64,000 bases of DNA from Anthoceros angustus (taxonomy: Eukaryota; Plantae; Anthocerotophyta). A model generated the notes under the pieces. It made no database searches, was not told the origin of the DNA, and was given only the letters and a program-made list of their open reading frames with translations. Below, in pieces: positions 1-60,227 of the stretch. Every line of letters begins with the position of its first letter. Position 1 is the stretch's first letter. Made by a program: the position numbers and the translations under genes. Location of the stretch: contig VJWM01000025.1 in assembly GCA_010909165.1 (NCBI GenBank), positions 2,666,001 through 2,730,000 on the forward strand. Direction: 5' to 3'.

Positions 1-2031
1 CGAGGATCCTGCTGCGTCCTCATCCTCTCCCCGGTCACTTGTTACGGTATTCTCCGGATGCTTGCGCATTTCCTCCTGCAACATCTCGGTCACCTCCGGA
101 CTCGTCCGTGGAAGCTAACGTCGCCGTCGCGGAGGCACCGTTCCTTCTCCACATCTGCGGAGAACTTCCTTGGGTAATCCCTCGGCGTGCTGCCGTCCAG
201 CCCTCCTTCGCCATCGGATCCTCTGCTGGTATTCCGTTTGATTGCCTTCCTCGGCGTCGTGGCCTTCCTCGATCTTGTTCTTCTTCAATGGCGCCTTTCT
301 CGTCGCTCCTTCCTTGACTGTAGACACCTCAAGATTTCCTCCCAACTCCTTCCTTTCGACACCCCCGTACCTTCTTGTTCTTTCCATCTCGCGTACCTCT
401 GGGAATCTCTTCCCACTCCGCCAACTGAGCATCTTCGACTTGCCGTACGGTAACAGTCTTAGGAGGTGGCGTTGGTGGTCGGGGTTCTCCGCTTGGTGTG
501 GCATATCGTACCGTCCTTGTGCGGGGGTTGGGACATAGCGTACTGCCTGTCATATGCCCAGCCTGCTTGCAGTCGCCACACAGCCGCTCGAAGTCCCCAT
601 TACCCTGCCTCGTTGGGTACGGACACGCGTTGGAGTAATGGCCAGGATTCCCGCAGTTCCAAGACCACGGTGTCGGAGGATACGAAGGGCTCCCATGCGG
701 TCTTTGCATCGGTGGGGCCCGTTGTATTGACGGACCTCGGTTGGCGGATACATGGTTTTGGGATATCGCGGCCCGGAGGGGCTTCACATGCACGATAGGC
801 CTCTTCCCATTGCTCCTCGGCCTCCTCCTCGTATTCGTAGTCCACTTGATGCACCGGCCTTGAGGCGGTTGGATTCGAATGGCCGTGTTCGGCACCGGCA
901 CACAGATCGTTCGCCGTGGTCGGTGTTTTCCGCGCTCTCGGTCCTTTTTGGTTTATCGCGGTCCTCTACTCTCTTTATCACTTTTCCGGTCCTCCGGACA
1001 CCTGCCTCCTTTGAGGGAGTCGGGTCCGTGGAGCTTCTCGGACGGTCTTGGTGTCACCACCTCCTTCTTACCACCTTCTTTTTGGCGGGCCTTTCTTGCT
1101 CTTCTTCTTGCGGGATACTCTTCCTCGCTAGAGACCTCCGTCTCTTCTTGGACTGCTCCTCCTCAAGACACCTCGATTGGTCTTCCTCCTCCTCAGACTC
1201 TTCCTCCTCAGTCGAACCCCGTTTCTTCTTCTTCTTCTTGCCTCCTTGAGCGGATTTCTTTATCCTCGATGTAGCGATTCCTCGTAGTTTTCGGCCGCTC
1301 GACCGCCTTGCCCGTCCTTCTCGGCGGCGGGGCGTGCACAGCCATGGGTTTGGCTAGACCGGCGAACCACCGTCACCGCTTGCATCGTGGTATGGGTTGG
1401 ATGCCGATCCCTCGGGGCGGAACGCTCGATGTCTGAGCCCTTCTCCTTCTTCCTCGCTTGATTTTCCAACTTTGATAATACATACCCCTCACGGTGATCC
1501 CTCGAAACCGTTCTAAGAAGGCATTTTCAAAGCTTCAAGCGAGGCGGGTGGGGCATTCTCCGGTGGTCGGTACTTTCTCCGATACCATTGAGCGGTCCTC
1601 GGAGAACCCCTTGGAAAATTTGGATGAGCGTCGACTCCCTCTCCGTTGAAGTTGGCTTTGGACACGAAGTCCTCCACAAAGGTCTCGCATCCGCTCCTTC
1701 TTCCCTCCGAATATAGATGCGCTTGTTTGGTCGAGGTAGGGGCCATGGCTGCCATCGATGGGTTAGGCGTGGTACCTACCTTCTTCCGTTGGCGTCCTCG
1801 TACCCGTACTCGTCTTGGTCCGACAATTCGACCACGTTCTCCCTCCTCGATCGGCGGTGCTCTCTCGTTGGGTTTGGCGTCTCTCCTCTCACGGCTCGGA
1901 GAGCACGCGAGGTGACCACGTCCGATCCTCCCGAGTTCACTCTTGGCCGTCGCTCGCCACGCATTCACTTACCTTCTCTTCCTAAGGGCTGCGGCTGCGG
2001 ACCGATTTCATTCCCGGCAGCGGCGCCAAAA
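1..2031 (-). mobile_element. Ty3/gypsy LTR retrotransposon (Athila/Tat-like), 5' internal region with degenerate gag; runs off the window start
   Basis: ORF 329..901(-) has a degenerate CCHC knuckle (SWNCGNPGHYSNACP, first Cys replaced) and a second knuckle-like motif (CGDCKQAGHMTGSTLCP). Lys/Arg/Glu-rich gag-like segments lie upstream. Frameshifted. Begins at a PBS. Confidence 0.8.
2011..2028 (-). promoter_or_regulatory. Primer binding site (tRNA-Asp type) next to the inner end of the 5' LTR
   Basis: Minus strand reads ...cacgccaCA ttt TGGCGCCGCTGCCGGGAA, close to the Athila-type PBS TGGCGCCGTTGCCGGGGA. The LTR-terminal CA is at 2033-2032. Confidence 0.8.
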
Positions 2032-3200
2032 TGTGGCGTGACTTTGATAGCTGGCGCGCCAATCCGTGTCGTTGTAGGAAGAAGTCCGTTCCCAAAGGGA
2101 ATGATAGGCCCGTTCGCGTTTGGTGATTCTTACCGTCCTTAGCGCTCGTTCGTCTCAACACACACATACTCCTAACTACTCAGCGTTCACCGTCTGGCCG
2201 GTAAGCGTTTAGACCCGTTCGCGTCCGTATCGTTCACATCCTCACGCATCATCCTTTCCTCTCTCCTCTCACGCTACACTCTTGATCTTAGAAAAAAGCC
2301 GCGGTTCTGTGATCCGGACCTCCTCGTCGTTCGCGGGCCTCTCCGTCCGGGCTCTACACACCTCCGAGTTCCTCCGGCTCACGCGTTCGATCGTCGGTGT
2401 CGGACGCGGCTCGACGAACCGCGGATCACGGTCACCCTTCCCCGCACACACCACAGCGTTAAGTCCGTCACGGGACCTTGATCAATCTCCCGGGTAGTGC
2501 ACCTTTCGGTGACTCGGGACTCACGTTAGCAAGAAGACTCACAAAGGTGCAGAGCGGCATCAACACCAAGAGAAAGATGCTTTACTAGGCGACCTCGGCC
2601 CCTCTTATCTGCGCCCAAGGTGGCGTCTTTATTACACCCCTATTACGGGCGTGCTTCGGTATACCCTAATCGGCCTACCACCCTATCCCCTATCTCCCTT
2701 AGGTAGGGAAGGTCCAGCCCGCCTCGGAATGGGTGGTCAATCCCCGTCACGGCGGTTGTGGTGCACCCAATCGGATGATCCGTGAGGCGGGCCCTCCTCT
2801 CCCGGAATCACATCGGGTTGGGCTCTGGCGGTCGACAGCCGTTACCGGCGTCATCCTCCCAGGCCTCACAGGTCGCCCGGGGTGGGGCCACCGGCTATCG
2901 GCTCCCCTAAGCGTAAGTCGAAGGGGCTCCTCCTTCTTGCCCGGCCTCGAGGTCCGGACTTGGTCCGACTGTGGTCCGGACTTGGTCCGGACTTGGTCCG
3001 GACTGTGGTCCGGACTTGGTCCGGACTTGGTCCGGACCTCGGTCCGGACCTCGGGGTCCGGACTTGGTCCGGACTTACGAGGTCCGGACTTGGTCCGGAC
3101 TTATTCATCGGACTTGGTCCGGACTTATCTGGGTCCGGACTTGAGTCGGACTTGGTCCGGACTTGAGTCCCTCCTCTGGGTCCGGACAAAGTCCGACTCA
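2032..3200 (-). mobile_element. Probable LTR; inner end at 2032, outer end unresolved (~2870-3200)
   Basis: Directly upstream of the PBS, ends in CA, has AATAAA on the minus strand near 2630. No second LTR in the window to fix the boundary. Confidence 0.5.
2950..3200. repeat. Tandem array of an ~11-bp unit GGTCCGGACTT containing the palindrome GTCCGGAC
   Basis: Roughly 20 imperfect copies are directly visible. Confidence 0.95.
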
Positions 3201-6075
3201 CGCCCACCCGGTTTCCTCCCTCACGGACTCCTCGTGGCTCTCTCCTCAAGTCCTCCCCATTCCCGATCGCCCGGTGACTCGCCGTTGGCCCTCCTTCCAT
3301 GGTGAGGTGCGGGTGCTTACCTCAGCGCATCCGCTCGTTACGCTCCTCGGTTGCTCCTCTCGCGCTCCGTCATCTCAAGCAGGGCCACTAGGGTCCCTGT
3401 CATCCCGTGGCCTTCATCTCCTTGAGCCTTCCAGTCCGTCCGTCTGCGGCGTCGAGAGGCTTCGCCTTGAGCTCGCGTGGTAATAGGCAAAGTCCGAATC
3501 GACTTGTTGAATTGCCTCTTCCACGTGTGCGGGAGCACCCGATACTCCCTCCGCCATAAGTGTTGGAGGGGCGTCTTTGCCGGCTTGTTGGGCCACCTCT
3601 CCTGCCCGGTTGTGGTGGGCCGGGCGTATCACGCGAGGCTACAAGGCGGCCTCGGTCACCTCCTGCAGGCTGCTCCGCTCGCTCCGTTTCCTTCCATTGC
3701 CCGCTTACCGCCATAGCGCGGCGTTCCCTTCCGCCTTTCTCGTGGACGGCGGCTTCTTTTTCCGATTGCTCGCGCTCCCGTTCATTACGGCCTTTAGCTC
3801 GCCGGCTCCTCTCAGGCGGTCGGATACCTCCGTCCAGGCTCGGACTTCCTCCGGCTCACCTTCCAGCAGCGTCCAACTCCTTGGATAGTCGCCGATTTTC
3901 CTCCGTCTTGACGGAGCCGAGGCACTGCTTCGTGCTCGGTCGTGGATTCTCTCGTTGAGAATCACTGCGCTCCGCATCTTGGGTTGTAGCTCCAGTGTCC
4001 TTGTCCTCCATCTGCCGCCTCCTTCTACCTCCTGCGGTGTGCTCGGAGATCCTCTATCTCCCGAGTCTCACCCTCTTGGCCTCTAACTCCTTTGTGCGGC
4101 CAGTTATCACTGTGACTCTCTCCACGGTTCGATCACGTCAGAGTGATCCGGTCGCTCTTCACGACCAGGCTCCTTCGCCGCCTTTACAGGCCTCGCCCAT
4201 TGGCGCTCTGGCGGGCCGCCTCCGCCCGGTCCGAGCTCTCTCTGCTTGTGCCGGGCCTCTTCCGCCTCTGCTGCGCTTCCCCTCTTTCGCTGCAAGGTCC
4301 TCCGCCCGCGCTTGGCCTCCCAGCTTGCTTGGTGTTGGTGAAGAACCTTAAGTCTGTGAACCGCCGGGCCTCGCTCCGCCACCGTTTCCCTTCCTCGATC
4401 CGAGGGACTCCGCCTTTCCTTTGCCCTCGGCCGCCTTCACTTGCTCTTGGGTTCCACCATCCTCCTCGGGTGGCCTCCACTTCAGGTCTTCTCTGTACCA
4501 CAGAGACCCCAAAGCATTCCGTCCATGGCAGTGGCAGACTCGCCGTGTTTCTTCCACGGCCACAGTGAGGCCCCACAAAGTCCGTAGTGAGCCGGCATTT
4601 CTCGGTCCGCCAAGGACCTCCACGATCCGGGAAGTCGGTGGGTTCTCGGACCTAATCGGGACCCTCGGTCACAGTGGTGAGGTCCGAGTCTCACCCTCTT
4701 GGCCCTCTTGGCCTCTAACTCCTTTGTGCCCTCTTTCTCACAGGGCTCGGAGGAGGTGAGGGGTCGGGAGCAAGCTCTTTTGCCCCTTCACATCGGGGCA
4801 GGCCGGCTCGAGGTGGGGCTGCGCGGTGACCTCCTGCTCCTTGGGCCACGTCCTTCTCTCCTTACGCCTCTTGACCTCTTGCCACTCAGGTGGCGGGGGT
4901 AAGTCTGCTCGAGGTCTTTGCGTTGGTAAGCGGCACCGTCTTCCGCCTCTTGGCTCCCGAGTTCGTCGGGGCTCGGCGTGTCGTGGTTGTTGGTACATCG
5001 GTCGAGCCGCCAGCGCCCTCGGCATCGGCTCCCTCACTGCTGCTCGGAGGGCACCAAAAGGAGGAAGGGGAATCGCCTCCCAAACTTCCACAGGTGGTGA
5101 GGGGTTCGCTCAGGGTGGAGTCAGGAATCCTCCCGATCGTCCTCCTCCAGTCCGCTTGGTCTTGAAGGGCGACCCCCACCTCGCGCCCTTGCACGCTCTG
5201 CCAGCGGCCTCCGGCCCTTCCGGGCGCCGCTCAAGCTCTCCCTCCAGGGCTCGAAATGTCCCCATACATGAATCGGTATGGGGTCACCGATGGCGAGGCT
5301 TCTCGCTCCTTAGCTTGCGTGCCTCTGGACAGGCGAAGATAATCCTTCCCCGGTCCGCTCTCTTCCCAGCGCATGCGAATACCAGGTTATCACCAAGGTG
5401 ATCCACCTTGGTGAGTTCAATGGACAATGATCCGGCTACCGCCCTTACTCGGCGGATCGGATATCAACCATCCGTTGGTTGTCCTGCGTTCGAGCCTCTC
5501 GCGCGTGTGGCCCTATCTTCCCCGCCTTAAGGGGCTCGGCACCACGCCCCTTCTTCCTCCTTGAGCGGTTGTAGGCCATCCTCGGGACCTCAAGGTCCAT
5601 CGCCTCGGGTCCTCCGGAGGTTCTTGGATCGGACCTCCTTGTTGATCGCCGGCATCTTCGGGCAAACTCCGGACTAGAGTAGCGTTGTCAAAGGTCCGAC
5701 CATTTGGAACACGTCCGGATGCCACTCCTGCACCAATTCCCCAGCTTCCTCCGGCCGGGCGAAGTCCGGATAGCGCGGGTCACAATGTTGCGCTCCACGA
5801 GGTCCATGGCTCCCACTCCGTCGGCTTTTGGGTGCCATTGCTTTCTCCTCCTCTTGTTCTTGTAGGCTGCGGAGTCCGGCACGATGTTCCTCCTTGCCGC
5901 GTTCTGCTCCAACCCAGCGGTGCGCCACGCTCTAAGGCGGCGCCCAAAAGATAGCGCCAGAGAGCCGGATTGCGGGCGCAAGGGAGAGGGGAGGATGCGC
6001 GGCGACCTCCCTCCTTGGCGCTTGTGGAAATCTGGCGGAAGGCGCCTCTTCGTTGTCCGTAGCGCGAGTGCGCAT
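3200..6075 (-). pseudogene. Degenerate retrotransposon accessory ORF (env-position, coiled-coil-like), same sense as gag
   Basis: Chain of frameshifted Glu/Arg-rich minus-strand ORFs (5688..5981, 4886..5194, 4738..5091, 3338..3538) with the same composition as the adjacent element. Short internal duplication at ~4066-4097 and ~4689-4729. Confidence 0.45.
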
Positions 6076-19827: not shown

Positions 19828-21411
19828 TCATAGGTCGTCCCACAGCTTGGGATCCGCAAAGGAATCGCCTCCAATGGCGTCGTCGAAGGCGTCCGCTCCT
19901 CCAGGCTGGTGCCCTCCCAGCTGCATCTGCTCCAGCGCCAAGGCCTGCCGGAGCTCCAGCTCGTCCAAATCCAGCTGCAAGCACGCGCCCGGCGCACTGC
20001 ACGTGCTGCTGCTCACCATAGCCCCTAGCGCTGCTCCTGTTCCGCTTCCCGCATTGGCATTGGCATTTGCAAAGCTCTGTCGCTGCTGTTGTTGCTGTTG
20101 TTGCTGGTGTTGCTGGTGTTGCTGGTGTTGCTGGTGTTGCTGGTGTTGCTGGTGTTGCTGGTGTTGCTGGTGTTGCTGGTGTTGCTGGTGTTGCTGGTGT
20201 TGCTGGTGTTGCTGTTGTTGCTGGTGTTGCTGTTGTTGCTGTTGTTGCCGCTGCTGCTGCTCCTGGACCTGGAACCAGTCGTGAGCCGTGGAGAGACGGG
20301 AGGATGTGGCTGTGGCTGCCGTGTCCCCGAGAGAGTCCAGAGCTGAATCCACGAGGTCCCCGGACAGCTCCCCCCGCGGGCTCATGCTCGCCCAGAACTG
20401 CGCGTCCGGATGCATCAGCATTTGCTGCTGCTGCTGGCGCTGCTGCTCCTGCTGCATCATCTCGTGCTGCAGCAGCTCCATTTCCATCTTCATCTCGTGC
20501 TGCCGCAGTATGTGCAGCTCCAGCTGCAGCTCCAGCTGCTGCTGCTGCTGCTCCAGCTGGAAGTGCCCCAATTCCGCCTGGCCGTGCCTCCTCTGCAGCT
20601 GCACCTCCATCTGCTGCTGCTGTGTCTGCAATCGTTGCTGCTGCAATTCCTGTTGCTGCTGTTGCTGCTGCAATTCCTGTTGCTGCTGTTGCTGCTGCAA
20701 TTCCTGTTGCTGCTGTTGCTGCAATTCCTGCTGCTCCTGCAATTCTTGAAGCTGCTGCTGCGGCTGGAAATGCTGGGACTGCTGCTGCTGGTGCTGCAAA
20801 TGTTGCGAATGCGAATGCGAGAGCGAGTGCGAGTGCGAGTGCGCCTGGGCCTGAGCCGCCCTGGCAGCAGCCGCCTGAATGGCCTTGGACGACAGCTTGC
20901 AGCTGGAGCTGGCAATGGGCGGCGGCTGCAACTCCGGCCTGGAGTCAGGAAAATTGAGCCACGCATTGGGACCCCGCAAACACACAGCCGCCATGTCGTA
21001 CGCCCTGGCCGCCATCTCCGGCGTGGCAAAAGAGCCCAGCCAAATCCTGGACCTCTTGTGCGGCTCCCGAATCTCCGACACCCACTTCCCCCACCGCCGC
21101 ATTCTCACGCCCCGGTACTGCTTCCCGGTTCCGCCATTCGCATTCGGCCCCAGCAGGCTGCTCACTTGCTGCTTCTTGCAGGGGCTCCCGCTCTGCCTGT
21201 CCACCATGGTCTTCCCGGATTCACCTTCCTCCGAATCCTCCTCCTCCAAATCCCCAAACTCCGCCTCCGCCTCCGCCTCCGCCTCCTCTCCTTCCCACGC
21301 TCCCAACCAAACCTCTCCCTCCCGCTGCTCCTCCTCCTTCTCCTCCTTCCCCGTCTCCTCCGATTCAGCGTCCGCTGGGCCTTTGCCTCTGCTGCCCTGC
21401 GGCCTGCTCAT
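19828..21411 (-). CDS. AP2/ERF transcription factor, DREB subfamily (TINY/A-4 or A-5-like), with long polyQ and (QQH)n tracts
   Basis: Intronless 527-aa ORF. AP2 domain [57 protein letters not shown] carries the DREB-type Val/Glu. Followed by [14 protein letters not shown] and a C-terminal DPKLWDDL. Confidence 0.95.
20090..20260. repeat. Coding 9-bp minisatellite (GCTGGTGTT)n encoding QQH repeats on the minus strand
   Basis: About a dozen perfect units plus flanking CAG/CAA codons. Confidence 0.95.
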
Positions 21412-22970
21412 TCATCCAATTCGGGCGCAGCGGGCCGGGCGGCCAATGGGGGCAGGATCGGGATCGGGGCCGTCACCTGGCACAGCAGCGCGCGCACACA
21501 TGGGCCGGGCGCCGAGCGCCGGGCAAGGCCGGGACGGGACGGGACTGGATTCCGCTGCCTCGATTCGACTCCGGACTCTGGCTGGCCGCTGGGCTGGATT
21601 GCTGATTGCTGATTGCTGGCTTGGATCGATGGATCGATGGATCGACAGGCGCCGCGGCCCGGCACTCCGGCTGTGAGGGGAAGTTGCAACTTGTGCTCGA
21701 CAGTTGGTGCTGGCTGGTCGGGACCATATATCTCACTCCTCCTGGCACCACGGGGGTACGTGGCGCAAAACCCACCCCCGGGCCCGCTCGCGCCGACGCG
21801 TGTCCCCGGGCCCGCCTGCTGACGACCCCAAATATCGCGCACGGTGTGCTCGGCCTCACCAAACCCCATACCCATACGTGGCCCAGCGATCGCGCGCGGA
21901 GTTTCACGACCCGCCACCTGCCCCCTGCCCACGAGCTGCCCGAATCAAAAACGCGCCCTCACTGCGGCCGCGGCCGCGGGTCCGGACCCGGGCGTGCAAC
22001 CTCATGGAATCAGGACGCGCGGCCCGCCCCGGTTCGCTGCAAACCAGCACGTGCCTCCGGCTCCGGCAAGCACAACGAGAAGATGGGGCCCGGCCTGGCG
22101 GCTTTCGCTTGGCTTCGCAGAATCGGACTCCCGGCTTCACAGACAGACACATGGACTCGCCCTTCCATTTCCGAGCGCGACCCTTCTTCCGTCTCCTGCA
22201 GCTCTGCTGCCGAGCCACAACCACACCCCGAAACGGTCCCACACACTTGCAACGACTCCTCCCAGCTCTCTGCAGGGCAGCCAGGAAAATGGATTCAATT
22301 CCTGCCTAGCAACGGCAGACGGAAGCGACCAAGGAGGAGGCGTTGGGATATTTTCCTCTTTCTGGCAGTTGTTTCGTCTCTCTGCACAAGCTACTGGACC
22401 ATTCAATGGAATTCAATGCAAAGCTTGACTTGACTGGAGCATTGGTTGTGTGTACATGTGGAAGTACTACTGGGCCTGCTTGTGTAGGAGAAACCCCCTG
22501 CATGATGAGCTCCGAGTACGGGTGGGGCACCAGCAGAGGGACAGGAGGGCGAGGGAGTGTCGCTTGCTCCATGGACGGGAGCAGCCTCCCTCCGACTCCC
22601 TCCTTCCAGCTTCCCCTCCACTCACTTGTGGGGGGTTTTTGTCCTGCTCTACTCCGGAAGGTGCTGCAGGCAGGACAAGGAGCAAGGAGGTGGCATTCAA
22701 TGGAAGTGTTGGCAAGGAATGTGACACAAAGCAGAATTCTGAAATGGGGAGGTGGATACCGGATCGGAGCGGCTGCTGCAGGACCCCTGTTCGACGGCGG
22801 GCTTCGACTCCGACCTGGACAAAGGAAGGCTCCTCGGAAAATAAGTTACTTGCTCCGGAGGGCTTCCCGGCTTCCTCTTCACTGCACATGGCTGCCTGGT
22901 GCTAAGAGATGCTGGGTAGGTGGGTGATAAAGTGATGTGGGCGCGCGCGCGTGTGTGTGTGTGTGCGTCT

Positions 22971-24544
22971 TCAGGTGGGGCTGGCGGTTGCCGCCTTGTA
23001 CTCTGGACTGTTGACATAAGTTAAAGCCTCCTCCAGCACCTGCTTCATCCTGTGCACAGATGGCCGCACGTCTTGGTGTTTCAGGTATATTTCCTTCACA
23101 GTGGCCCACCCCAGGTCTGCTATGCTCTGGGGATCCCTCAGCACCGGGTCATCCTGGTCGTACTTGTCGCTCAAGGAGCTCTCCGAGGGCTCGATCTTGT
23201 AGGGCAGGTAGTGGAGGCCCAGCTTGGTGGCAGGCTCGCCGTAGTAGGTCCATGCAGCCCAGTCTGTGCCCAGGGGAATGATTTGGATGAACACAGCCCC
23301 CGGCCTCATGAACAGGAAGTGCGTCATGGCAGCACCATGCACTCCCAGCATCACGTCGCAGGAGTCCAGCACCTTGTACATGTCACGCAGCTCCATCGTC
23401 GCATCTGGTATGAGGAGCCTGACAGCAAACCCTACTTGCTGTGCACCAGCTTCGATCTGCTCCAGGTTCATGATGATCCGGCTGTCGTTCCTGGCCAAAA
23501 TCACTAGCGTCGGTCTGCCTGGATGCATCTTCTTCATTTCATTCACTGCCGTGCTACTCTCCTCCGCCCCACCGCTGTACGCTCGGTCCAGAACAGCTCG
23601 AAATCCTCTGATGCTCTCCCCGCCAGGCATGAGCTCCGGCACCACAGCCAGCTCCTCGTGGAAGTGCACCCCGACCGTCACCTCAGGGAAGCAGTGCACT
23701 CTCCCGTCCCCTTCCAGATCGATCACCTCATGGTTGGTGAGCTGCCTCACCACATCCCGGTACTTGGTGAACCACCAGTCATGGTACTCCACGATGATGA
23801 ACACAACCTCCCCCTTCAGATGCTGCGAGGTCACGTACACAGGAATCAGTCCGTCGTTGAACTCGTGGTACACATTCCCAGTGTATCCCCCGGTAGTGAA
23901 CACCACGGCCGGAACTGTGTGATTCACATCGCACTCTGGAGCATGCTTCATCTCTTCTCCAGATCCCCTCACGCTCCTCAGCACCACCTCGTGCACAGAA
24001 TCCATGGTGCTCTGCTCCCACTTCCTCGTGTACGGCCTTATCCTCTCCTCCCCCAAGGAAGTGTTCTCCAGAGCTGTGTACAGCACGAACCTGCTCAGGC
24101 TTCCCACCATGCGCACATCCCCCTTCATCGTGCACACATCCGTCCTGTAGTGCGACCGATCGCAGGAGAAGACTTCACCTCTGTGCATTCCCGGCAGAAC
24201 CGGCACCCTCAGCCTCGCCTTCCCTGCGACAAGACGCGAATTAGGGTTGCTGCATCAAGAACGTCAGATTCCTTCCAACTGCAACTGCAAGCGAGCTCTG
24301 CGCCTGCGACAAGGGAAGCAGGCAAGCCCTGCTATGCTACGCTTCATCCACCTGGGAGTAAGCCGGGAAGCGAAGCCCGCATATTGAGCAGAGCAGTGAG
24401 GAGGACCACCATGATCAACACCAGCGCACCCACCAGCCGGAGTTGCATCCCCTTCCTGGGCTGCTGCGCGAGACGGGATCGGAATCCCGGCATGTTGGAA
24501 GCGACTCTGAAAGCGAACGCGGGGCTGTCCCGCCCTTTCCTCAT
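22971..24544 (-). CDS. Glycosyltransferase family 61 (DUF563; xylan arabinosyl/xylosyltransferase-like), 2 coding exons
   Basis: CDRSHYRTDVC, IRPYTRKWE, PAVVFTTGGYTGNVYHEFNDG, VMLGVHGAAMTHFLF, type II TM segment LVGALVLIMVVLLTALL. Intron 24351-24224 (GT-AG) keeps the frame. Start codon uncertain. Confidence 0.93.
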
Positions 24545-24917
24545 TGCGAGCTCACCAGCCAGTCCAAGTCCGGGGAGCCGGTCCAAGGGACATCGCCGTT
24601 CGCATCCGATCTCACCGATTGCCTGCACCCATCGGATGCGATGCGAAGGATCCCCGAAGGATCCGACGACACGCAACCGAGCTGTCAGCCTTCGGCACAT
24701 CCGGCTTTCAGGAAAGTAAAGTTCTAGTAACTGCCTTCTCACCTGCTCCTCCGCAGACGCACGCGAGCTGCTATTTGCGTGTTTTGCTTTGGGAAGCATG
24801 CCCTTCACACGTTTTCATTCGTCTGGCTGGATTTGTACGTTTCTCTGCTGTGCAAAGTTTGCCATACTCTCGACACCATGGATGGGAGGCATCCCAGGAA
24901 GACGGACACAAGTGTTT

Positions 24918-27565
24918 CTACATGGGGACATTTCCTCGAGGGTGTCCTAACACTAGCCTGAGCACTTGACTCCACATCTGTGTTCTTGCTTTCAGAGCCT
25001 TGGGATTGGAGAGAAGATTTCCCTTGAAGTCTGCATCCTGCAACAGAGAGGCAGCAGCAGCAGAAGCGAGTGGTTGGTACCTGGTAGGTTGGTTTGATGG
25101 AAGAGCAGAGATTGATGGGCAGCTGCTTCCTTGAAAAGCATGGTGGAGGGGTTTGGTTTAGAGTGGCAGTGGTACCTCTGTGAGAAGTTCATCCAGGGCT
25201 GCAACCAGAGCATCCTTCCTGTTCAGGATCCACCTGGTGTCTTCGTAGCCGAGGAAGCCCAGCTGCCAGGGCCACCAGTGACATCAGACAGGGATGGTTC
25301 TGGAGAGGATAAGAGGACGTGAGCTGCAGACAGAGGACTTACCATCACGGTGTCCCACAGGCAGACGTTTGGATCCGGGTCATACCTTTGCCCACCCCTG
25401 CAGGCCGGGTGGAAGAGGGTTAGTGACGAACCAACCAGACCAGGGGTCTGTTGATTGCTGGATCACTTAAAGCATGAGCTGTTTATGCTACTTTCCTACC
25501 TTCAAGTATCACACTGAAGAGCAGGCAGTGTGCGGCTGGGAGAGGATGGAGGGATTGTGAGGTCTGTGCATCAAATGTGCCAACAAAACTCAGTGCTAGG
25601 ACTTTCTGCCAAGTACCGCGGTAATCGGAAGACTTGGTCACCAAAGACGCCCACAGAAACTGAGATGCACCGCACAAAGTCAGCTTTCATCTTCTGGGCC
25701 TCACTTTCAGTTAGAGCATGATTCCTGCGGCAACAGAGAATTGTTGAAAATCATATTAGCACGCCAGCGTTGGTCTTCTCAAAGTATGTGAGCTGGATGT
25801 GCTTCGGAAAGCACGTGACATACCTTCTCATTTCATTATTGAGCCAGTTCTTGACAGGTAGGAAGAAGTTCTCAGTGCCACCCCTCCGTAAGGCCAGAAA
25901 CCTCAACACAAATTCTCTGTCCCGCATTCTGCACCAGAGAGTCAATGTGACAAAGGCTGCTGCAGCTGCGATTCACACCATGCTCTAGGACTCACAGGTA
26001 GACCTTTTATGGGGTACTTCTTGACGAAACGCTTTCAGCATGGCCGGAATCAGAACTAGTTCTTCCAAAAGATCATTGTATCTGCACAAACACACAACCA
26101 AAAACTTAAAGAGGAAGCTTCCCACCGGCTCACAGTGCGTTTCCTGTACAGACGAGATGCCCCACCTGCCTTGAAACACACAGTTGCGCAATTCCTGCTC
26201 GTTCAACTGTGCCAGAAAACCGAGAAAAATAAATAAGCCATGCTTGTGACCAAACATTAGTGAGTTCTTCAAATTTTCCACACCAGTCTGACAAACTTCA
26301 GGAAGAGGACATACCTGTGTGGATCCCATGTTGAGCCGCTCGAAGACCTGGTGCACGAAGGATAGAATGTAAGCAGACAGGCAGCAGATGAGTCAAGCCA
26401 GGAACTGGAGAGATGCACACCTCAAAGACGACATCATCGTCAGAATGACGTGAGATTGTGTGCACATTGAGAGCAAAGTCTTGCATTGCCTGGAACTCCG
26501 GCACACGAACATTAGCGAGGCAGAGCAGTCCAGCTGCCACCAAAATCGCAACAAACAAAACGGGTATCTTCACACCTCTCGTAAGGGTTCATCAAGGCTT
26601 GAGTATCTCTTTCCATTGAGCTGCACATACAGTGAGAAACAAGTCAAACACACTCCAGTCTGGGAAACAGTATATAGTTTATGCCATGCCCAACTTAGCA
26701 ACAAGGACGAACTTAGTACCTGGTCAAGAACCTCCAGTCCAACCAGGGCAAAATCAGAACCGTCTGGAAACTTTTCTGTTTCCATGAAAGACCTGCAAAG
26801 CAGACTTGCTTTATTGTGCCTTCCAGCAAGTCCAGTCCAGAAAAGGGAACAGACGCCAGCCAGCAGCTCACCAGATGCTGGTCAGACGTTGCTTTCCGTC
26901 CACTACCTCCAGTTGACCCCTAAGACAAGCCACATCAAGCCGTTGAAGGGCAAAACCAATCCAACCAATCGGATTTTCATCACAGGTATATATTCATATG
27001 CATCGCTGCTGCAAGTGTCATACTGGTTTCTTTCGTGAAAGAACATGGTCGGCAGAGGTATGTTGAGCAGGACGGATTCAATGAGCTTGCTTGCTGTCCT
27101 CTTGTCCCAGACATAGTCTCGCTGCACGCAGCATCACAGACAGTTTAAGGGCAGCTTCGTGCCACCCAACATCACACCGAGGGCTGCCACGGAGGTGAAT
27201 CATCAAGTCACCTGATACGACGGTCTCAAGTCCAATCTACCACGACGGATTTTATCCAGAACAGAACTGACGGTGTAATCTGGCCCAAAAACCCAACATT
27301 TCCATCAGACAGGGATGTGCCAGGACCCATCCCCTCAACAGGAACCGCATTCGTGAAGTGCAATACCCGCTTTGGTAATCTGAAGAACCCTCTCGCCCGA
27401 GACCATTCGGCGCTCCACCATCTTGGGCGCAGGAGCCTCGGATTGGTACCCATCTTCATCCTCAGCCTCGGAATCCTCCTCCTCAGCGGACACAGGAGCC
27501 ACTTTCTTCCTCCTCCCCCTCCGTGGCGGGGGCACTGCATCCACCTCCTCAGTCCCTTCACCCAT
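24918..27565 (-). CDS. DUF262 domain protein (GmrSD N-terminal/SspE-type, ParB/Srx fold), 15 exons, ~408 aa
   Basis: Manual splicing gives exons 27565-27367, 27279-27212, 27121-27024, 26919-26872, 26792-26720, 26620-26576, 26489-26421, 26347-26315, 26206-26166, 26081-26004, 25928-25824, 25724-25617, 25397-25343, 25262-25176, 25037-24918 (1227 nt, all GT-AG, one open frame). Contains the three DUF262 motifs LRPSYQRDYVWD, VVDGKQRLTSI and VFERLNMG, then LNEQELRN. The start codon could lie further upstream. Confidence 0.9.
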
Positions 27566-28135
27566 GGACGAGGAAACAGCGGAAACAGCGAAAACAGCGG
27601 AAACAGCTACTCTGTTGCCGCCCACTAGCCCGTTCGGACCCCAAGCCCCTCCACACATGCTGCCGTGGTGGCATTGCCGGGACCCAACTGCTACAACAGG
27701 AGAAGGAATCTTCCTCCGTCTCCATCCCCAGTCGGTCCTTGAGCACAAATCTGCCCAGACTTGCGCACGGCTTAAGTCTGGCAGCGGGAATGTTGCAATC
27801 CAAGCTGTCATTGTGGTTCCCAGTGATGTGATCCTGAAGTCACCTACGCGTCGTGACCAGACCCATCGCCCACAAACATCCAGCAGCCCGTCTTTTGTCT
27901 CCAGTCTCGGACAAGCTGCTCTCCCAGACTCACGTCTCGCTGACTACGTTATCTACTATATATGTTAACATTTACATATTTAGTTTATATATAGTCCCGT
28001 GCTCCGCATCGTGAACTGACGGAGGCTTGTTCAATGACAACGGGGTTTATCCCGGGTTTAGGGCCGACTGATGAGAATTTTTGAGCGAGCGGGCATGGAC
28101 GTTGCGGTTCGAGAATTTTGAGACGTCGCTGAGCC

Positions 28136-31100
28136 ATGGCAGTGGCCGGGGCAGGGCCGGGAGGCCACTCCCAAAAGCACAAGCAGCATAGGGTGCCTAA
28201 GGCGGGGCCTGGTGCTGAGAAGAAGGCTGTTGTTGATAAGAAGAAGCGAGGACTGTCTACAGCCAAGTCCAATCCCAAGGTGTGTGCAAAATGGGTGTTT
28301 TGGATGGCTTGCACAATACGGGGATTCGCTTGCGTTGGTCATGTACGCTCGGTGCTTGCTGGTGAATTCTTGTGATTGCTTGCTGATTGGGAATCTCCGT
28401 GTGACTCCCGGTGGCAGGCTTTTACATTCAATGCTGCCAAGAAAGCGAAGCGCCTTCAGGCTCGAAGTGCTGAGAAGGATCAGCGCAGGCTGCATGTGCC
28501 GATTGTCGACAGAACTTCTGGGGACCCCGCTCCCTTCATCATTGTGGTGCAAGGACCTCCACAGGTGAAGTGAGCTAACGTTTAGGGCAAGTTTTGAATT
28601 GGTGATTTGATTGATGGCTGAAAATGTTGAGGTTGATTCCACCGTGTTTCATGCATGACATGGAAATTCAGGTGGGGAAGACGTTGTTGATTCAGTCTCT
28701 TATCAAGCATTATACCAAGCACAACCTCTCTGATGTCCGAGGACCCATAACTGTGATATCAGGTTGGTGCAGTCCTGTCCTCTGTTGGCCCTGGGTGTAT
28801 ATTCTGCATCCTAGCTTGCTGTCGAGCTGCCTTGCTAGCACAGACTGCTCTGCTCATTTGCACATGATTGCTCCTGCCAGGAAAACATAGGCGCCTCCAG
28901 TTCATGGAATGTGCAAATGATGTCAATGCGATGGTTGACTGTGCAAAGGTTGCGGATCTTGTACTGCTTTTGGTGGATGGGAGCTACGGCTTTGAAATGG
29001 TAGGTGCTGCACAATGACTTCTGCAGCTTCTGGGCGAGGCTCAAGAGGATTGCATGTCCAGGAACAAGAGGCTTAGAGTAACCATCTTTGGAGCCTGTAC
29101 CGGTGACTTAGCCTGTGTTTGCTGCAGTACTCAATGTTCTTTTCTGCTTGTTTTGTGGACAGGAAACGTTCGAGTTCTTGAACATCCTTCAAGTTCATGG
29201 ATTCCCAAAAGTGATGGGAGTACTCACTCATTTAGACCAATTTAAGGATGCCAAGAAGTTGCGCAAGACGAAGAAGCAACTGAAGAACCGCTTCTGGACA
29301 GAAATATATGATGGTGCCAAACTCTTTTATCTGTCTGGCCTCATTTATGGGAGGTAGGAGCTGTTGGAATCATAGTTTCTGTCCTTCTACATAATATGTG
29401 CTGTTACTGAGCATACATTCTGATAGATTCCTGTCGTTGCGACAAATCTTCAGGTATCCAAAACGAGAGGTACTCAACTTAGCACGGTTTATCTCAGTTG
29501 CTAAATTCAGGCCTCTGACATGGCGTGTAAGCCACCCCTACATTCTGGCTGACCGGTTGGAGGACGTGACCCCTCCTGATAGGATCCATGCAGATCCATT
29601 GTGTGATCGCAGTGTCACTCTGTATGGATATTTAAGAGGAAGCAATCTCAAGCTAGGGATGAAAGTGAGTTCCTGTTCCATGGCGGGTGTTATGGTGATC
29701 ATTCATGCTCTCTTATTGACAGTGAAGATTCAGTTTTATTGGAGGTTTAATATAATGCTGTGTATGCAGGTTCACATTGCAGGAGTAGGAGACTGCAAAC
29801 CTGCTAGTATTGCTGCTCTCCCTGATCCATGCCCTCTTCCATCCGCAGCCAAAAAGCGTGGGTTGCGGGAGAAAGAGAAGCTGTTGTATGCTCCTATGTC
29901 TGATGTTGGAGAAATGCTGTATGATAAGGATGCGGTCTACATCAACATCCATGATCATCTAGTGCAGTTCTCAAAGCCTTCTGGTGAAGATGGCGTTGCA
30001 GAATCGGCTCCAGGTGGTTTGACATTCGTTTTTTCGCCCTCTCTCATTTCTTGCTAGTGCACACTAGCATTTAATACAAGTACGCATATTCTTGCAGGAA
30101 AAGGTAATACAGATGTTGGAGAAACCATGGTGAAAAATCTTCAAGCAACAAGATACTCGATTAATGAGAAGCTTGAGCAAAGCTTCATTCAGCTGTTTAG
30201 AGACAGGGCCCCCATAAACTCAATGGACGAGGGATCAGAAAGAGGTGAGCACATTGAGGAGGAAAATAAGCCAGAGGAGGATGGCAATGAGGGTATTGAT
30301 GACAGAGATAATAAGCCAGAGGAGGATGGCGATGAGGATACTGATGACGAAGAGAAGCCAGAGGAAGATGGCGATGAGGATACTGATGACGAAGATGAGC
30401 CAGAGGAGGATGGCGAGGAAGCAGCTGATGATTTGCAGGAAGATGCCTCGGAGCCAAAAGCAACTATCAAACTGGAAGCTGGTAGATACCAATCGAATGG
30501 CAAGAGAGCACAAGCCCAGGCTGACTTTGAACAGAGTGGGCATGATTCAGAATCAGGAGATTCCAGTGATGACGATGGAAGTGCTTCAGACGATAGTGAT
30601 GTGGGAAGGTTATTCAAACGTAGAGCTGCTGCCAATGGCACTGGTGGGAATGGACTCCACTTGAAGGCCAATCATCATGTGAAAACTCCACATGTGAGTG
30701 GGGAGGGTGTTACGGAAGTGAGAGAAGTTATTGATGGGAGGTTGAGGAGAAGAGCTGTGTTTCACGAGGACCATCTTGGAGGACAGGAAGGTGGGAATGC
30801 AGACCCTATGGACACGAGTGATGACGACGAAGAATATGGCTCAAGTGACGATGATCAGGTGCAGAGATGGGTACTTTGGGGTCTCCAGCTTGCATGTGCA
30901 AGCACTCCTTTGGCGCCCTTGACTGCAGTTGTGTTATGTGTAACAGGTTGCTGTCGTTTGATGCTTCAGGGTGACCATGACATTGATGGTGATGGGCAAA
31001 GCTCAGAAGGACACAAGGATGACACCAACTTGCAAAATGTAAAGGGACCAACCAGAGAAGATCTGGAGAAAGTAGAGGCAGATACACTTGGCAGCGATGG

Positions 31101-57905: not shown

Positions 57906-60227
57906 ATGGAGCGGCGGCTGCTTGTGCAGCTGGTGCTGGCGGCTTTGCTGCTGTGTTCTGCGGCTGTGCGTGCCTCTGAGGTGAGTGATGCAGCTCACAT
58001 CTCATTCTTGTGAGCTTCCCTCCCTCTGCCTGCTTCTTTCGATGTCGGATTGGTGTTTCTTGACGGATTAGGTCATCCGCACCTCCGCGACGAGGTAGAT
58101 CCTTGCTTGCCGGTTCTTCTGCGCTGCGGCTCTCCGCTGTGTCTCCCCCCCGCAAGCGTGTGCTGAGGCTTGCTTGCTTGATGCAGGTTTTCTACGACTC
58201 CTTCGACGAGACGTGGGAGGGCCGGTGGATCGCTTCCGAGAGAGCTGATTATCAGGGTATGTTGATGGCCTGGTTGCGCCTTGCTCGTGAGGAGCTGGAT
58301 CCGGTTGATTGTCTCGTGATGCCTTTGTGCAAGATCTGCGGCAGCTGTGGATGCGGTAGGGTTAAAGAAGGGTGTTTGAGGAGTTAAGGTTTGTTGTGGC
58401 AGGGACGTGGAAGCACGAGGTTAGTAAAGGGCATACCGACCACGGGCTTTTGGCCAGTGAGAAGGCGCGGAAGTATGGTATAGCTGTAGATCTGCCTGAG
58501 AAGGTGGAGTTGGGAGACGGCACCGTGGTTTTGCAGTACGATCTGAGACTGCAGAGCGGTTTGGAGTGTGGTGGGGCCTACTTGAAGTTCTTGGTTCCGC
58601 AAGAAGCCGGCTGGACCCCTAGCCAGTTCGACAATGAGTCCCCCTACTCCATCATGTTCGGGCCCGACAAGTGCGGGGCGACCAACAAGGTCCATTTCAT
58701 CTTCAAGCACAAGAATCCGAAGACGGGAGCCCTTGTGGAGCATCACCTGAAGAGCCCTCCGACTCCGGTCAATGACAAGCTCTCTCATGTCTACACAGCT
58801 GTGCTCCATCCCAACAACTCGGTGAGCATTCTTGTAGATGGAGAGGTGAAGAAGACCGCCGATCTGTTGTCCAACGATTTTGAGCCCACGGTGATTCCTC
58901 CGACCACCATTCCTGATTCTGAAGACAAGAAGCCGGAGGATTGGGACGAGAGGGCTAAAATCCCTGATCCTGAGGCGACGAAGCCTGATGACTGGGATGA
59001 GACAGCTCCTCGGGAAATTGAGGATGCTGAGGCTGTTAAGCCCGAAGGTTGGCTGGATGATGAGCCTGACGAAGTTGACGACCCGGAAGCAGAGAAGCCT
59101 GAGGACTGGGATGATGAGGAGGACGGCGAATGGGAGGCACCGAAGATCCCCAACCCCAAGTGTGACGAGGCCCCTGGTTGCGGTGAATGGAAGCGGCCCA
59201 CGAAGAAGAATCCGGCATACAAGGGGAAATGGAGCGCAGCTTTGATCGATAACCCAGCGTACAAGGGAATATGGGCGCCCAGGCAGATTCCCAACCCAGA
59301 CTACTTTAAGCTGGAGAAACCCGAGTTGTTACCCATTGGAGCTATCGGCATCGAGATCTGGACCATGCAAGACGGAATCCTGTTTGACAACGTCCTTGTT
59401 GCCCGTGATGAGGAGACAGCGAAGAAGTACAGAGACGAAAAGTGGAAGCCAAAGTTCGACGTTGAGAAGGAGTCGCAAGATGAGGACGATGAGGACGAAG
59501 AGGGTGAGAAGAAGTCCGCACTGGATGTTGATGCCATCAAGGTACCTAATCGCAGAACCCCTACCTCTCTTCTAGGCTTTTTTCAGTCTCGCCTCTGGAT
59601 GTCTGCCATAACTGGGTTATATGCTGTTGCAGGAAAAGTTGTTCCAACAACTGCACAAGGTGGCTGAGGTCCCAGCCTTGGCTCCATACAAGCACCATCT
59701 GAAGGTATGCCCAGAGTTTTGTTGACATGTGTAATGTTTCTTTGGTAGCATGGATCCGAGGGAGGTGTGGTTTGGCCATGTGAGAGGCCGGTCCCCCGGC
59801 CTTCATTGTCAAGCAAAAACGCTAAGATGCTGCTCCTCGTAACATGTTCAGGACCTTATTAAGAAGGGTGAGGAGAATTCAACCTTGACCCTCGTTATTT
59901 TTGGATCAATTCCAGTCATCCTCTTCCTGGTAGTATTGAGGACCTTGTTCGGTGGAAAGAAGCCTTCTTCGGTAAGTCACGAGCCCCCTGCATTTGTCCA
60001 CTTTGCGGTTTGATGTGTAGGGTGTACCCTCACGGTATGGCACGTGGTGTCTGCAGGGTGTTGCCAAGTCAAAGAAAGAGGACATCACGTCACCAGATGA
60101 TGTGACTGACAAGGCCAAAGACGAGTCGGCGGAAGGAACCGTCGAGAAGGAGGCGTCTGGTGAAATAGAAAAGGAAAACGAGGAGGTTGCGGGGGCGCGA
60201 CAGAGGCGACCCCGGAGAGAGACATGA
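57906..60227 (+). CDS. CNX1: Calnexin, multi-exon
   Basis: Signal peptide exon; [19 protein letters not shown]-domain repeats [27 protein letters not shown]; TM exon; C-terminal RQRRPRRET*. Confidence 0.97.

Follow-up and report, generated by a model that had tools for sequence, protein, structure and literature searches.

The gene considered here has its closest described counterpart in NsnA, a protein proposed to act as the sensor of the bacterial Menshen anti-phage system; NsnA consists of a ParB-DUF262 domain and a helical DNA-binding ParBDB domain (PMC12065111). DUF262 domains also occur in BrxU and the GmrSD type IV enzymes (Protein Data Bank (PDB) entry 7P9K), which carry a helical middle domain and a C-terminal DUF1524 His-Me nuclease (GmrD), and at the N-terminus of the phosphorothioate-sensing nickase SspE (PDB 6JIV and 7DRR), and the underlying ParB/Srx nucleotide-binding fold is shared with sulfiredoxin and with ParB, Noc and KorB, DNA clamps switched by cytidine triphosphate (CTP). 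Here, we analyze a 64,000-nucleotide stretch of contig VJWM01000025.1 from the hornwort Anthoceros angustus (the window, in whose numbering all positions are given), which contains on its minus strand an intron-rich DUF262 gene that a preliminary description had assigned to the GmrSD/SspE type. Profile comparisons place the encoded protein nearer to NsnA than to either GmrSD or SspE. We regard it as likely that the hornwort gene is a functional, single-copy nuclear gene, a judgment that extends to our explanation of the locus as a whole.

Domain architecture and relation to described systems

Exon 3 of the gene by itself matches the Pfam family PF03235 (GmrSD_N; E 6.8e-6, 26.8 bits), with a score that lies below the family's 33.2-bit cut-off only because the exon encodes a 32-residue fragment, and nine other exons, scanned as pieces too short for the purpose, gave no significant match. 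In orthologs that are 77% identical to the model, GmrSD_N scores 107-109 bits and is the only Pfam domain, so that membership in the DUF262 family, as initially proposed, is upheld. Pfam scans of six eukaryotic orthologs found no nuclease family. Among PADLOC profiles, the best by far is that of NsnA (PDLC03877), which is matched by the orthologs from Marchantia (273 bits), Chara (291 bits) and Mantoniella (257 bits) over approximately positions 34-382 of its 385 (34-359 for the 273-bit match); the next profile, PD-T4-2_A, scores about 140 bits, and SspE only 20-23 bits over some 20 residues. The GmrSD/SspE-type label was therefore abandoned, given the lack of a nuclease in the protein and its eukaryotic orthologs and the match to the NsnA profile over the whole length (273-291 bits).

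The AlphaFold model of the Marchantia ortholog core (mean predicted local distance difference test score 90.4) leads to a similar architecture. Its best structural match is BrxU residues 1-420 (Z 9.7), covering the DUF262 and helical middle domains with their common motifs and ending at residue 420, ahead of the BrxU nuclease, although identity is only about 15-17%; this is followed by the N-terminal NTPase domain of SspE (nucleoside triphosphate, NTP; Z 7.2-7.5 over about 140 residues), ParB-type CTPase folds (Z about 6; 5-6 when Noc, KorB and sulfiredoxin are included) and DndI (Z 5.3). Sequence searches were less telling, as the PDB returned only weak DUF262 matches to the family profile (7P9K, E 1.4e-4) and the ESM Atlas only generic bacterial GmrSD_N clusters, and a homodimer prediction for the Marchantia core scored 0.01, which speaks neither for nor against dimerization. 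From these comparisons, the protein is assigned the architecture of a ParB/Srx-fold DUF262 nucleotide-binding domain followed by a helical DNA-binding domain of the ParBDB type (NsnA-C / GmrSD-M), with no nuclease.

This two-domain arrangement, free of a nuclease in both cases, is common to NsnA, and the bacterial NsnA proteins are of similar size (~380 residues). The hornwort gene differs from NsnA in being eukaryotic and intron-rich, in probably encoding a long N-terminal presequence and in belonging to a clade of its own, apart from the sampled bacteria. Neither nsnB, which encodes an ABC ATPase with DUF3696, nor nsnC (inPIN plus effector) flanks it within the window. Compared with BrxU and GmrSD, the C-terminal DUF1524 nuclease is absent; compared with SspE, the hornwort protein lacks DUF1524 and the gene has no sspABCD partners, its neighbors being a GT61 gene and a BMS1-type gene. 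Relative to ParB, it is without the helix-turn-helix, the C-terminal dimerization domain and the ParA partner, and it carries DUF262-type motifs instead of the GERR box.

The nearest bacterial sequences are stand-alone DUF262-HNH proteins of about 450 residues, mostly cyanobacterial (Nostoc, Leptolyngbya, Halomicronema and Oscillatoria; loci L001-L007); their identity to the Chara ortholog amounts to 41-45%, in alignments that span some 93% of the query. These proteins end in a PF01844 HNH domain at roughly residues 400-455 (397-454 in P0176, P0204 and P0163), a domain found in none of the eukaryotic members scanned, and the plant proteins stop just short of that point. Exon 15 of the hornwort gene likewise ends where the HNH domain of the bacterial relatives begins, the model is collinear with the eukaryotic orthologs to its last residues, and a tblastn search of the window for a leftover HNH domain found no HNH-like stretch.

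These findings bear on the function initially suggested for the gene, that of a domesticated GmrSD/SspE-type module that would detect modified DNA or nucleotides (5-methylcytosine, 5-hydroxymethylcytosine, N6-methyladenine or phosphorothioate), here taken to work in the nucleus. Such a role would accord with the DUF262 fold and motifs that the protein shares with GmrSD, BrxU and SspE, but the protein has neither DUF1524 nor an HNH nuclease, and its family is matched by NsnA at 273 bits as against 20 for SspE. We consider a nuclear sensor of this kind doubtful, also for reasons of targeting discussed below.

Gene structure and the splicing of intron 12

Rebuilding the model from the window reproduced every element of the gene as it was first outlined: 15 exons joined by 14 introns, all GT..AG, a frame open from 27565 to 24918, and the three DUF262 motifs, namely YQ/RDYVW (motif I, interrupted by intron 2), VVDGKQRL (motif II) and FERLN (motif III). 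From the ATG at 27565, the coding sequence comprises 1227 nucleotides, or 408 codons and a TAG (24920-24918). Coordinates of all parts of the gene are collected in Table 1.

Transcript evidence was taken from assembled contigs of four public runs from four studies, one of which (X1) is identical to the window, while the other three derive from relatives that are about 95% identical. Thirteen of the 14 predicted introns appear as contig joints, given as exact to the base; the intron-5 joint of the three relatives (26622 to 26723/26724) is a few letters off the model and has no counterpart among the X1 joints listed. Intron 12 is the exception: in the contigs of all four runs, its donor lies at 25499/25498 instead of 25617/25616, that is, 118 nucleotides further on. 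The junctions of the preliminary description were thus borne out by RNA for all introns but the twelfth, where another donor is seen.

Use of the downstream donor retains a 117-nucleotide segment (25616-25500) that, upon translation, contains an in-frame TGA at 25573-25571 and terminates in another stop codon. If the productive junction were never used, the product would be truncated to 336 residues (from the ATG at 27565) or 418 residues (from an upstream ATG at 27811). One reading of the locus is accordingly that of a decaying or regulatory-only gene, whose main transcript stops early and yields little or no full-length protein, and the presence of the downstream donor in the contigs of all four runs speaks for it. 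However, exons 13-15, which lie beyond the TGA, remain open and collinear with the homologs to the last helix, keep the invariant R386, and diverge in the relatives far less than the 3' untranslated region (UTR), where 10 substitutions and additional indels fall within 24848-24903. The retained segment carries a 1-nucleotide insertion at 25541 in the relatives and is therefore not coding. Homologs align without gaps across the model junction 25617/25397, including a Trinity open reading frame (ORF) of the hornwort Nothoceros aenigmaticus (P0118; 86% identical over model residues 115-408), which places the productive junction in a transcript of that species. Finally, contigs of X1 and of another run, X7, break at 25616 with a 30-nucleotide overlap, the pattern to be anticipated if a second splice path made the assembly graph fork at the donor of the model. 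On these grounds, a decaying locus seems highly improbable to us, and the transcript with the donor at 25499 is taken as an alternative, unproductive form that would exist alongside a productive one.

A microexon at 25499-25512 was also considered and dropped, as a 219-nucleotide intron agrees with the homologs. Run X1 additionally contains unspliced contigs over intron 2 (27095-27241) and intron 10 (25901-26033), which represent pre-mRNA, intron retention or DNA carry-over. In Nothoceros aenigmaticus, two transcript isoforms are found (P0118 and P0156). Agreement of the shorter one with the window model ceases at residue 369, where exon 14 ends, suggesting that intron 14 is processed in an alternative manner in this species.

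Table 1. Parts of the hornwort DUF262 gene, in window positions and in order of transcription.
Feature	Positions	Strand	Content	Basis
Probable 5' extension of exon 1	27566..27811	-	82 in-frame codons from ATG 27811, transit-peptide-like	
Exon 1 from ATG 27565	27367..27565	-	Basic cluster RRGRRKK, acidic patch, start of conserved core	Joint 27279/27367
Exon 2	27212..27279	-	Ends ...RPSYQ (first half of motif I)	Model, transcript contigs
Exon 3	27024..27121	-	RDYVW... (motif I), start of DUF262 core	Model, contigs, Pfam GmrSD_N
Exon 4	26872..26919	-	VVDGKQRL (motif II), DGxQR nucleotide-binding motif	Model, contigs, conservation
Exon 5	26720..26792	-		Model, contigs
Exon 6	26576..26620	-		Model; intron-6 joint 26488/26575 in four of four runs
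Exon 7	26421..26489	-		Model, contigs
Exon 8	26315..26347	-	VFERLNMGSTQ (motif III)	Model, contigs, conservation
Exon 9	26166..26206	-	End of DUF262 domain	Model, contigs
Exon 10	26004..26081	-	Start of helical ParBDB-type domain	Model, contigs, AlphaFold model of ortholog
Exon 11	25824..25928	-		Model, contigs
Exon 12, productive form	25617..25724	-	Donor GTACTT at 25616	Gapless homolog alignment, contig breaks
Segment retained with alternative donor 25499/25498	25500..25616	-	117 nucleotides, in frame, with stops	Joint 25396/25499
Exon 13	25343..25397	-		Model, contigs
Exon 14	25176..25262	-		Model, contigs
Exon 15, coding part	24918..25037	-	TAG 24920-24918	Model, contigs, homologs
3' UTR, as far as contigs reach	24810..24917	-		X1 contig starts at 24810

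Conservation, distribution and origin

The coding sequence shows the pattern of a gene under constraint. Of 14 coding differences listed between the window and the relatives, nine are synonymous, and the five replacements are either confined to the N- and C-terminal tails or exchange L for V; exon 3 shows no difference in 102 nucleotides, as against 10 differences and 2 gaps in the 147 nucleotides of the contig over intron 2. Across 70 homologs, 53 columns reach a conservation of at least 90%, and the model keeps every one of them, including Q88 and R89, D128, G129, Q131 and R132, and F201, R203, L204 and N205, with motif II reading DGKQR in streptophytes and DGQQR in bacteria. The earlier view of an intact, spliced gene under purifying selection is in keeping with these counts.

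Relatives were gathered by a search with exon 3 followed by a second search. Named orthologs come from bryophytes (the hornwort Nothoceros, 86% identical; the liverworts Marchantia, Riccia and Calypogeia, 77%), from ferns (Adiantum, Pteridium and Ceratopteris) and from algae (Chara, 64.5%; Spirogloea, Mesostigma, Mantoniella, Bathycoccus and Cymbomonas), and the best 120 rows of one search, which extend down to 38% identity, name no seed plant, moss or lycophyte. The expectation that this is not a standard flowering-plant gene agrees with the lack of any seed plant among the named matches in these 120 rows. The orthologs are already present in UniRef and NCBI under automatic, Pfam-derived names; a survey of GmrSD counted only three eukaryotes (PMC4619093), and our literature searches, which combined DUF262 and GmrSD with terms for plants, algae, chloroplasts and bryophytes and included Mp5g12430, brought up no publication on its plant or algal members.

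All eukaryotic sequences form one clade, with a Shimodaira-Hasegawa-like approximate likelihood ratio test (SH-aLRT) value of 100 in two trees, in which Mesostigma, the streptophytes and the prasinophytes branch as in the species tree and the gene of the window is sister to Nothoceros (99). A clade that matches the species tree implies one ancient acquisition, then vertical descent with losses, and thus indicates, as far as such trees can, that the family was acquired once, before the split of chlorophytes and streptophytes, and apparently lost in seed plants. Of the two origins envisaged in the preliminary description, patchy inheritance from algae is the better option, whereas a recent or lineage-specific transfer is at odds with a Viridiplantae-wide clade that follows the species tree. 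In the larger tree, the DUF262-HNH proteins group as the sister of the plant clade (SH-aLRT 92); the smaller, quick tree of 44 rows retains the eukaryotic clade (100) but does not settle its bacterial sister, and we therefore name no donor.

In the cyanobacterial relatives, the genes stand alone among housekeeping genes, with no nsnB or nsnC. In one proteobacterial metagenome-assembled genome, a DUF262-HNH relative lies between a gene for a 1296-residue fusion of an Eco57I/MmeI-type methyltransferase with Schlafen AlbA_2 (L008:99-3986) and a large serine recombinase (L008:5850-8045), a setting that looks like a mobile defense island.

Prasinophytes, which are among the hosts of the family, are prey of large DNA viruses. 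The plant and algal proteins might accordingly be antiviral sensors retained from bacteria, which would detect invading DNA in the manner of NsnA, for example from giant viruses that infect green algae and spore plants, and signal to unlinked partners (an ABC ATPase and an effector), with loss in seed plants. The full-length NsnA-type architecture and the defense-island setting of the one proteobacterial relative would suit such a role. On the other hand, no NsnB or NsnC is encoded near the gene, the cyanobacterial relatives reside among housekeeping genes, and the eukaryotic members form a single-copy, slowly evolving clade congruent with the species tree, unlike fast-diversifying immune genes. 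An antiviral sensor therefore appears unlikely.

Probable presequence, proposed function and genomic setting

The reading frame continues upstream of 27565 without a stop to an in-frame ATG at 27811, which adds 82 residues. Contigs of all four runs are collinear with the window from 27367 to 27800 and extend some 87-216 nucleotides further, so that an ATG at 27565 would follow a leader of more than 250 nucleotides. The extension contains only three D or E residues and is rich in S, A, V, R and G; four of its five listed differences from the relatives fall at third codon positions, and an 18-nucleotide indel is in frame. We infer that the product is probably a 490-residue protein that starts at 27811 and comprises a presequence, an acidic patch and the conserved core. 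A 9-nucleotide tandem repeat lies near 27570-27600 within the putative presequence, where the three relatives are without 18 nucleotides, and within the acidic patch the same relatives have 6 additional nucleotides, inserted in frame at 27450.

An extended N-terminus is a property of the family. In 52 eukaryotic members, the core is preceded by a median of 134 residues, compared with about 35 in bacteria, and the median number of D or E among the first 40 residues is one, against an expectation of 5.8. This composition is that of organelle presequences, and the proteins are probably imported into an organelle; the plastid would be our guess as to which. Immediately after the presequence, chlorophyte orthologs of the Mamiellophyceae type (e.g., P0110, P0122 and P0200) share the conserved motif LLGD(E/D)QDKELW, which may mark the mature N-terminus. 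The nuclear sensor of modified DNA could draw on the RRGRRKK cluster near the N-terminus if translation starts at 27565, but the presequences found throughout the family point to an organelle, and it is these presequences of the orthologs, typical of organelle import, that make a nuclear role doubtful.

We propose, as our best inference by analogy, that the protein is an NTP-switched DNA binder with a role in an organelle. The presequence of the 490-residue precursor would direct the protein into the organelle, where binding and hydrolysis of NTP at the pocket formed by the QR, DGxQR and FxRLN motifs would switch its grip on DNA, as in ParB, SspE and BrxU, and the DNA would be held by the helical domain. 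The analogy to an NTP switch is drawn from the ParB/Srx fold that the protein shares with ParB, Noc and KorB. With neither an effector of its own nor linked partners, it would be a DNA-bound switch or sensor and not a restriction enzyme. Of this explanation, the gene structure, splicing, conservation, domain architecture and phylogeny are taken directly from the data, whereas the start codon, the targeting, the NTP switch and the binding of DNA are proposed. A more specific version of this proposal, which we put forward as possible but tentative, is that a plastid or mitochondrial ParB/DUF262 NTP switch of bacterial, perhaps cyanobacterial, descent, having lost its HNH domain, reads or organizes organelle DNA in green algae and spore-bearing land plants and serves a function that seed plants have dispensed with. 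It might, for example, tell marked from unmarked organelle genomes or guard them against foreign DNA.

Several considerations weigh against this explanation. Its function is proposed ahead of biochemistry for any eukaryotic member of the clade, and statements about the whole protein are drawn from orthologs and local alignment, not from the joined protein of the window. The stop-containing form of intron 12 is the one carried by the assembled contigs of all four runs, and the productive junction 25617/25397 is deduced from the contig break, homology and the Nothoceros transcript, as it is not among the joints listed, a listing from which two joints are missing. The apparent absence from seed plants, mosses and lycophytes refers to the best 120 rows of one search. 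The case for targeting is made from composition, the shorter start at 27565 leaves RRGRRKK, which resembles a nuclear localization signal, near the N-terminus, and short out-of-frame upstream ORFs (ATG 27879 and 27866) may precede the ATG at 27811.

Eukaryotic survivals of bacterial defense domains are being actively catalogued, and we did not find the DUF262/NsnA type described in plants in the papers searched. The family is old, single-copy and well conserved, and it occurs in Marchantia (MPTK1_5g12430) as well as in Anthoceros-type hornworts, two models that can be transformed, so that its role is directly testable. As a natural nuclease-free DUF262 sensor, it would allow the NTP switch to be studied by itself and, if targeted to an organelle, it would be a new kind of factor for organelle genome biology.

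The gene is flanked by plant genes, a GT61 gene at 22974-24206 on the minus strand and a BMS1-type AARP2CN domain at 29398-30054. Contamination, which had been argued against from the outset, is ruled out by the introns, these neighbors and a phylogeny that follows the species tree, and the locus is nuclear plant DNA. Elsewhere in the window, a single-exon ORF of 527 residues at 19831-21411 (minus strand) encodes an AP2/ERF domain (PF00847, 49.8 bits), and an intronless ORF of 431 residues at 58372-59664 (plus strand) encodes calreticulin (PF00262, 466 bits); with nearby genes being intron-rich, the latter may be a retrocopy. The stretches 1-6000 and 20001-22000 are rich in G+C (58-64%) and differ from the remainder of the window in this and in their strongly negative AT skew (-0.25 to -0.36).

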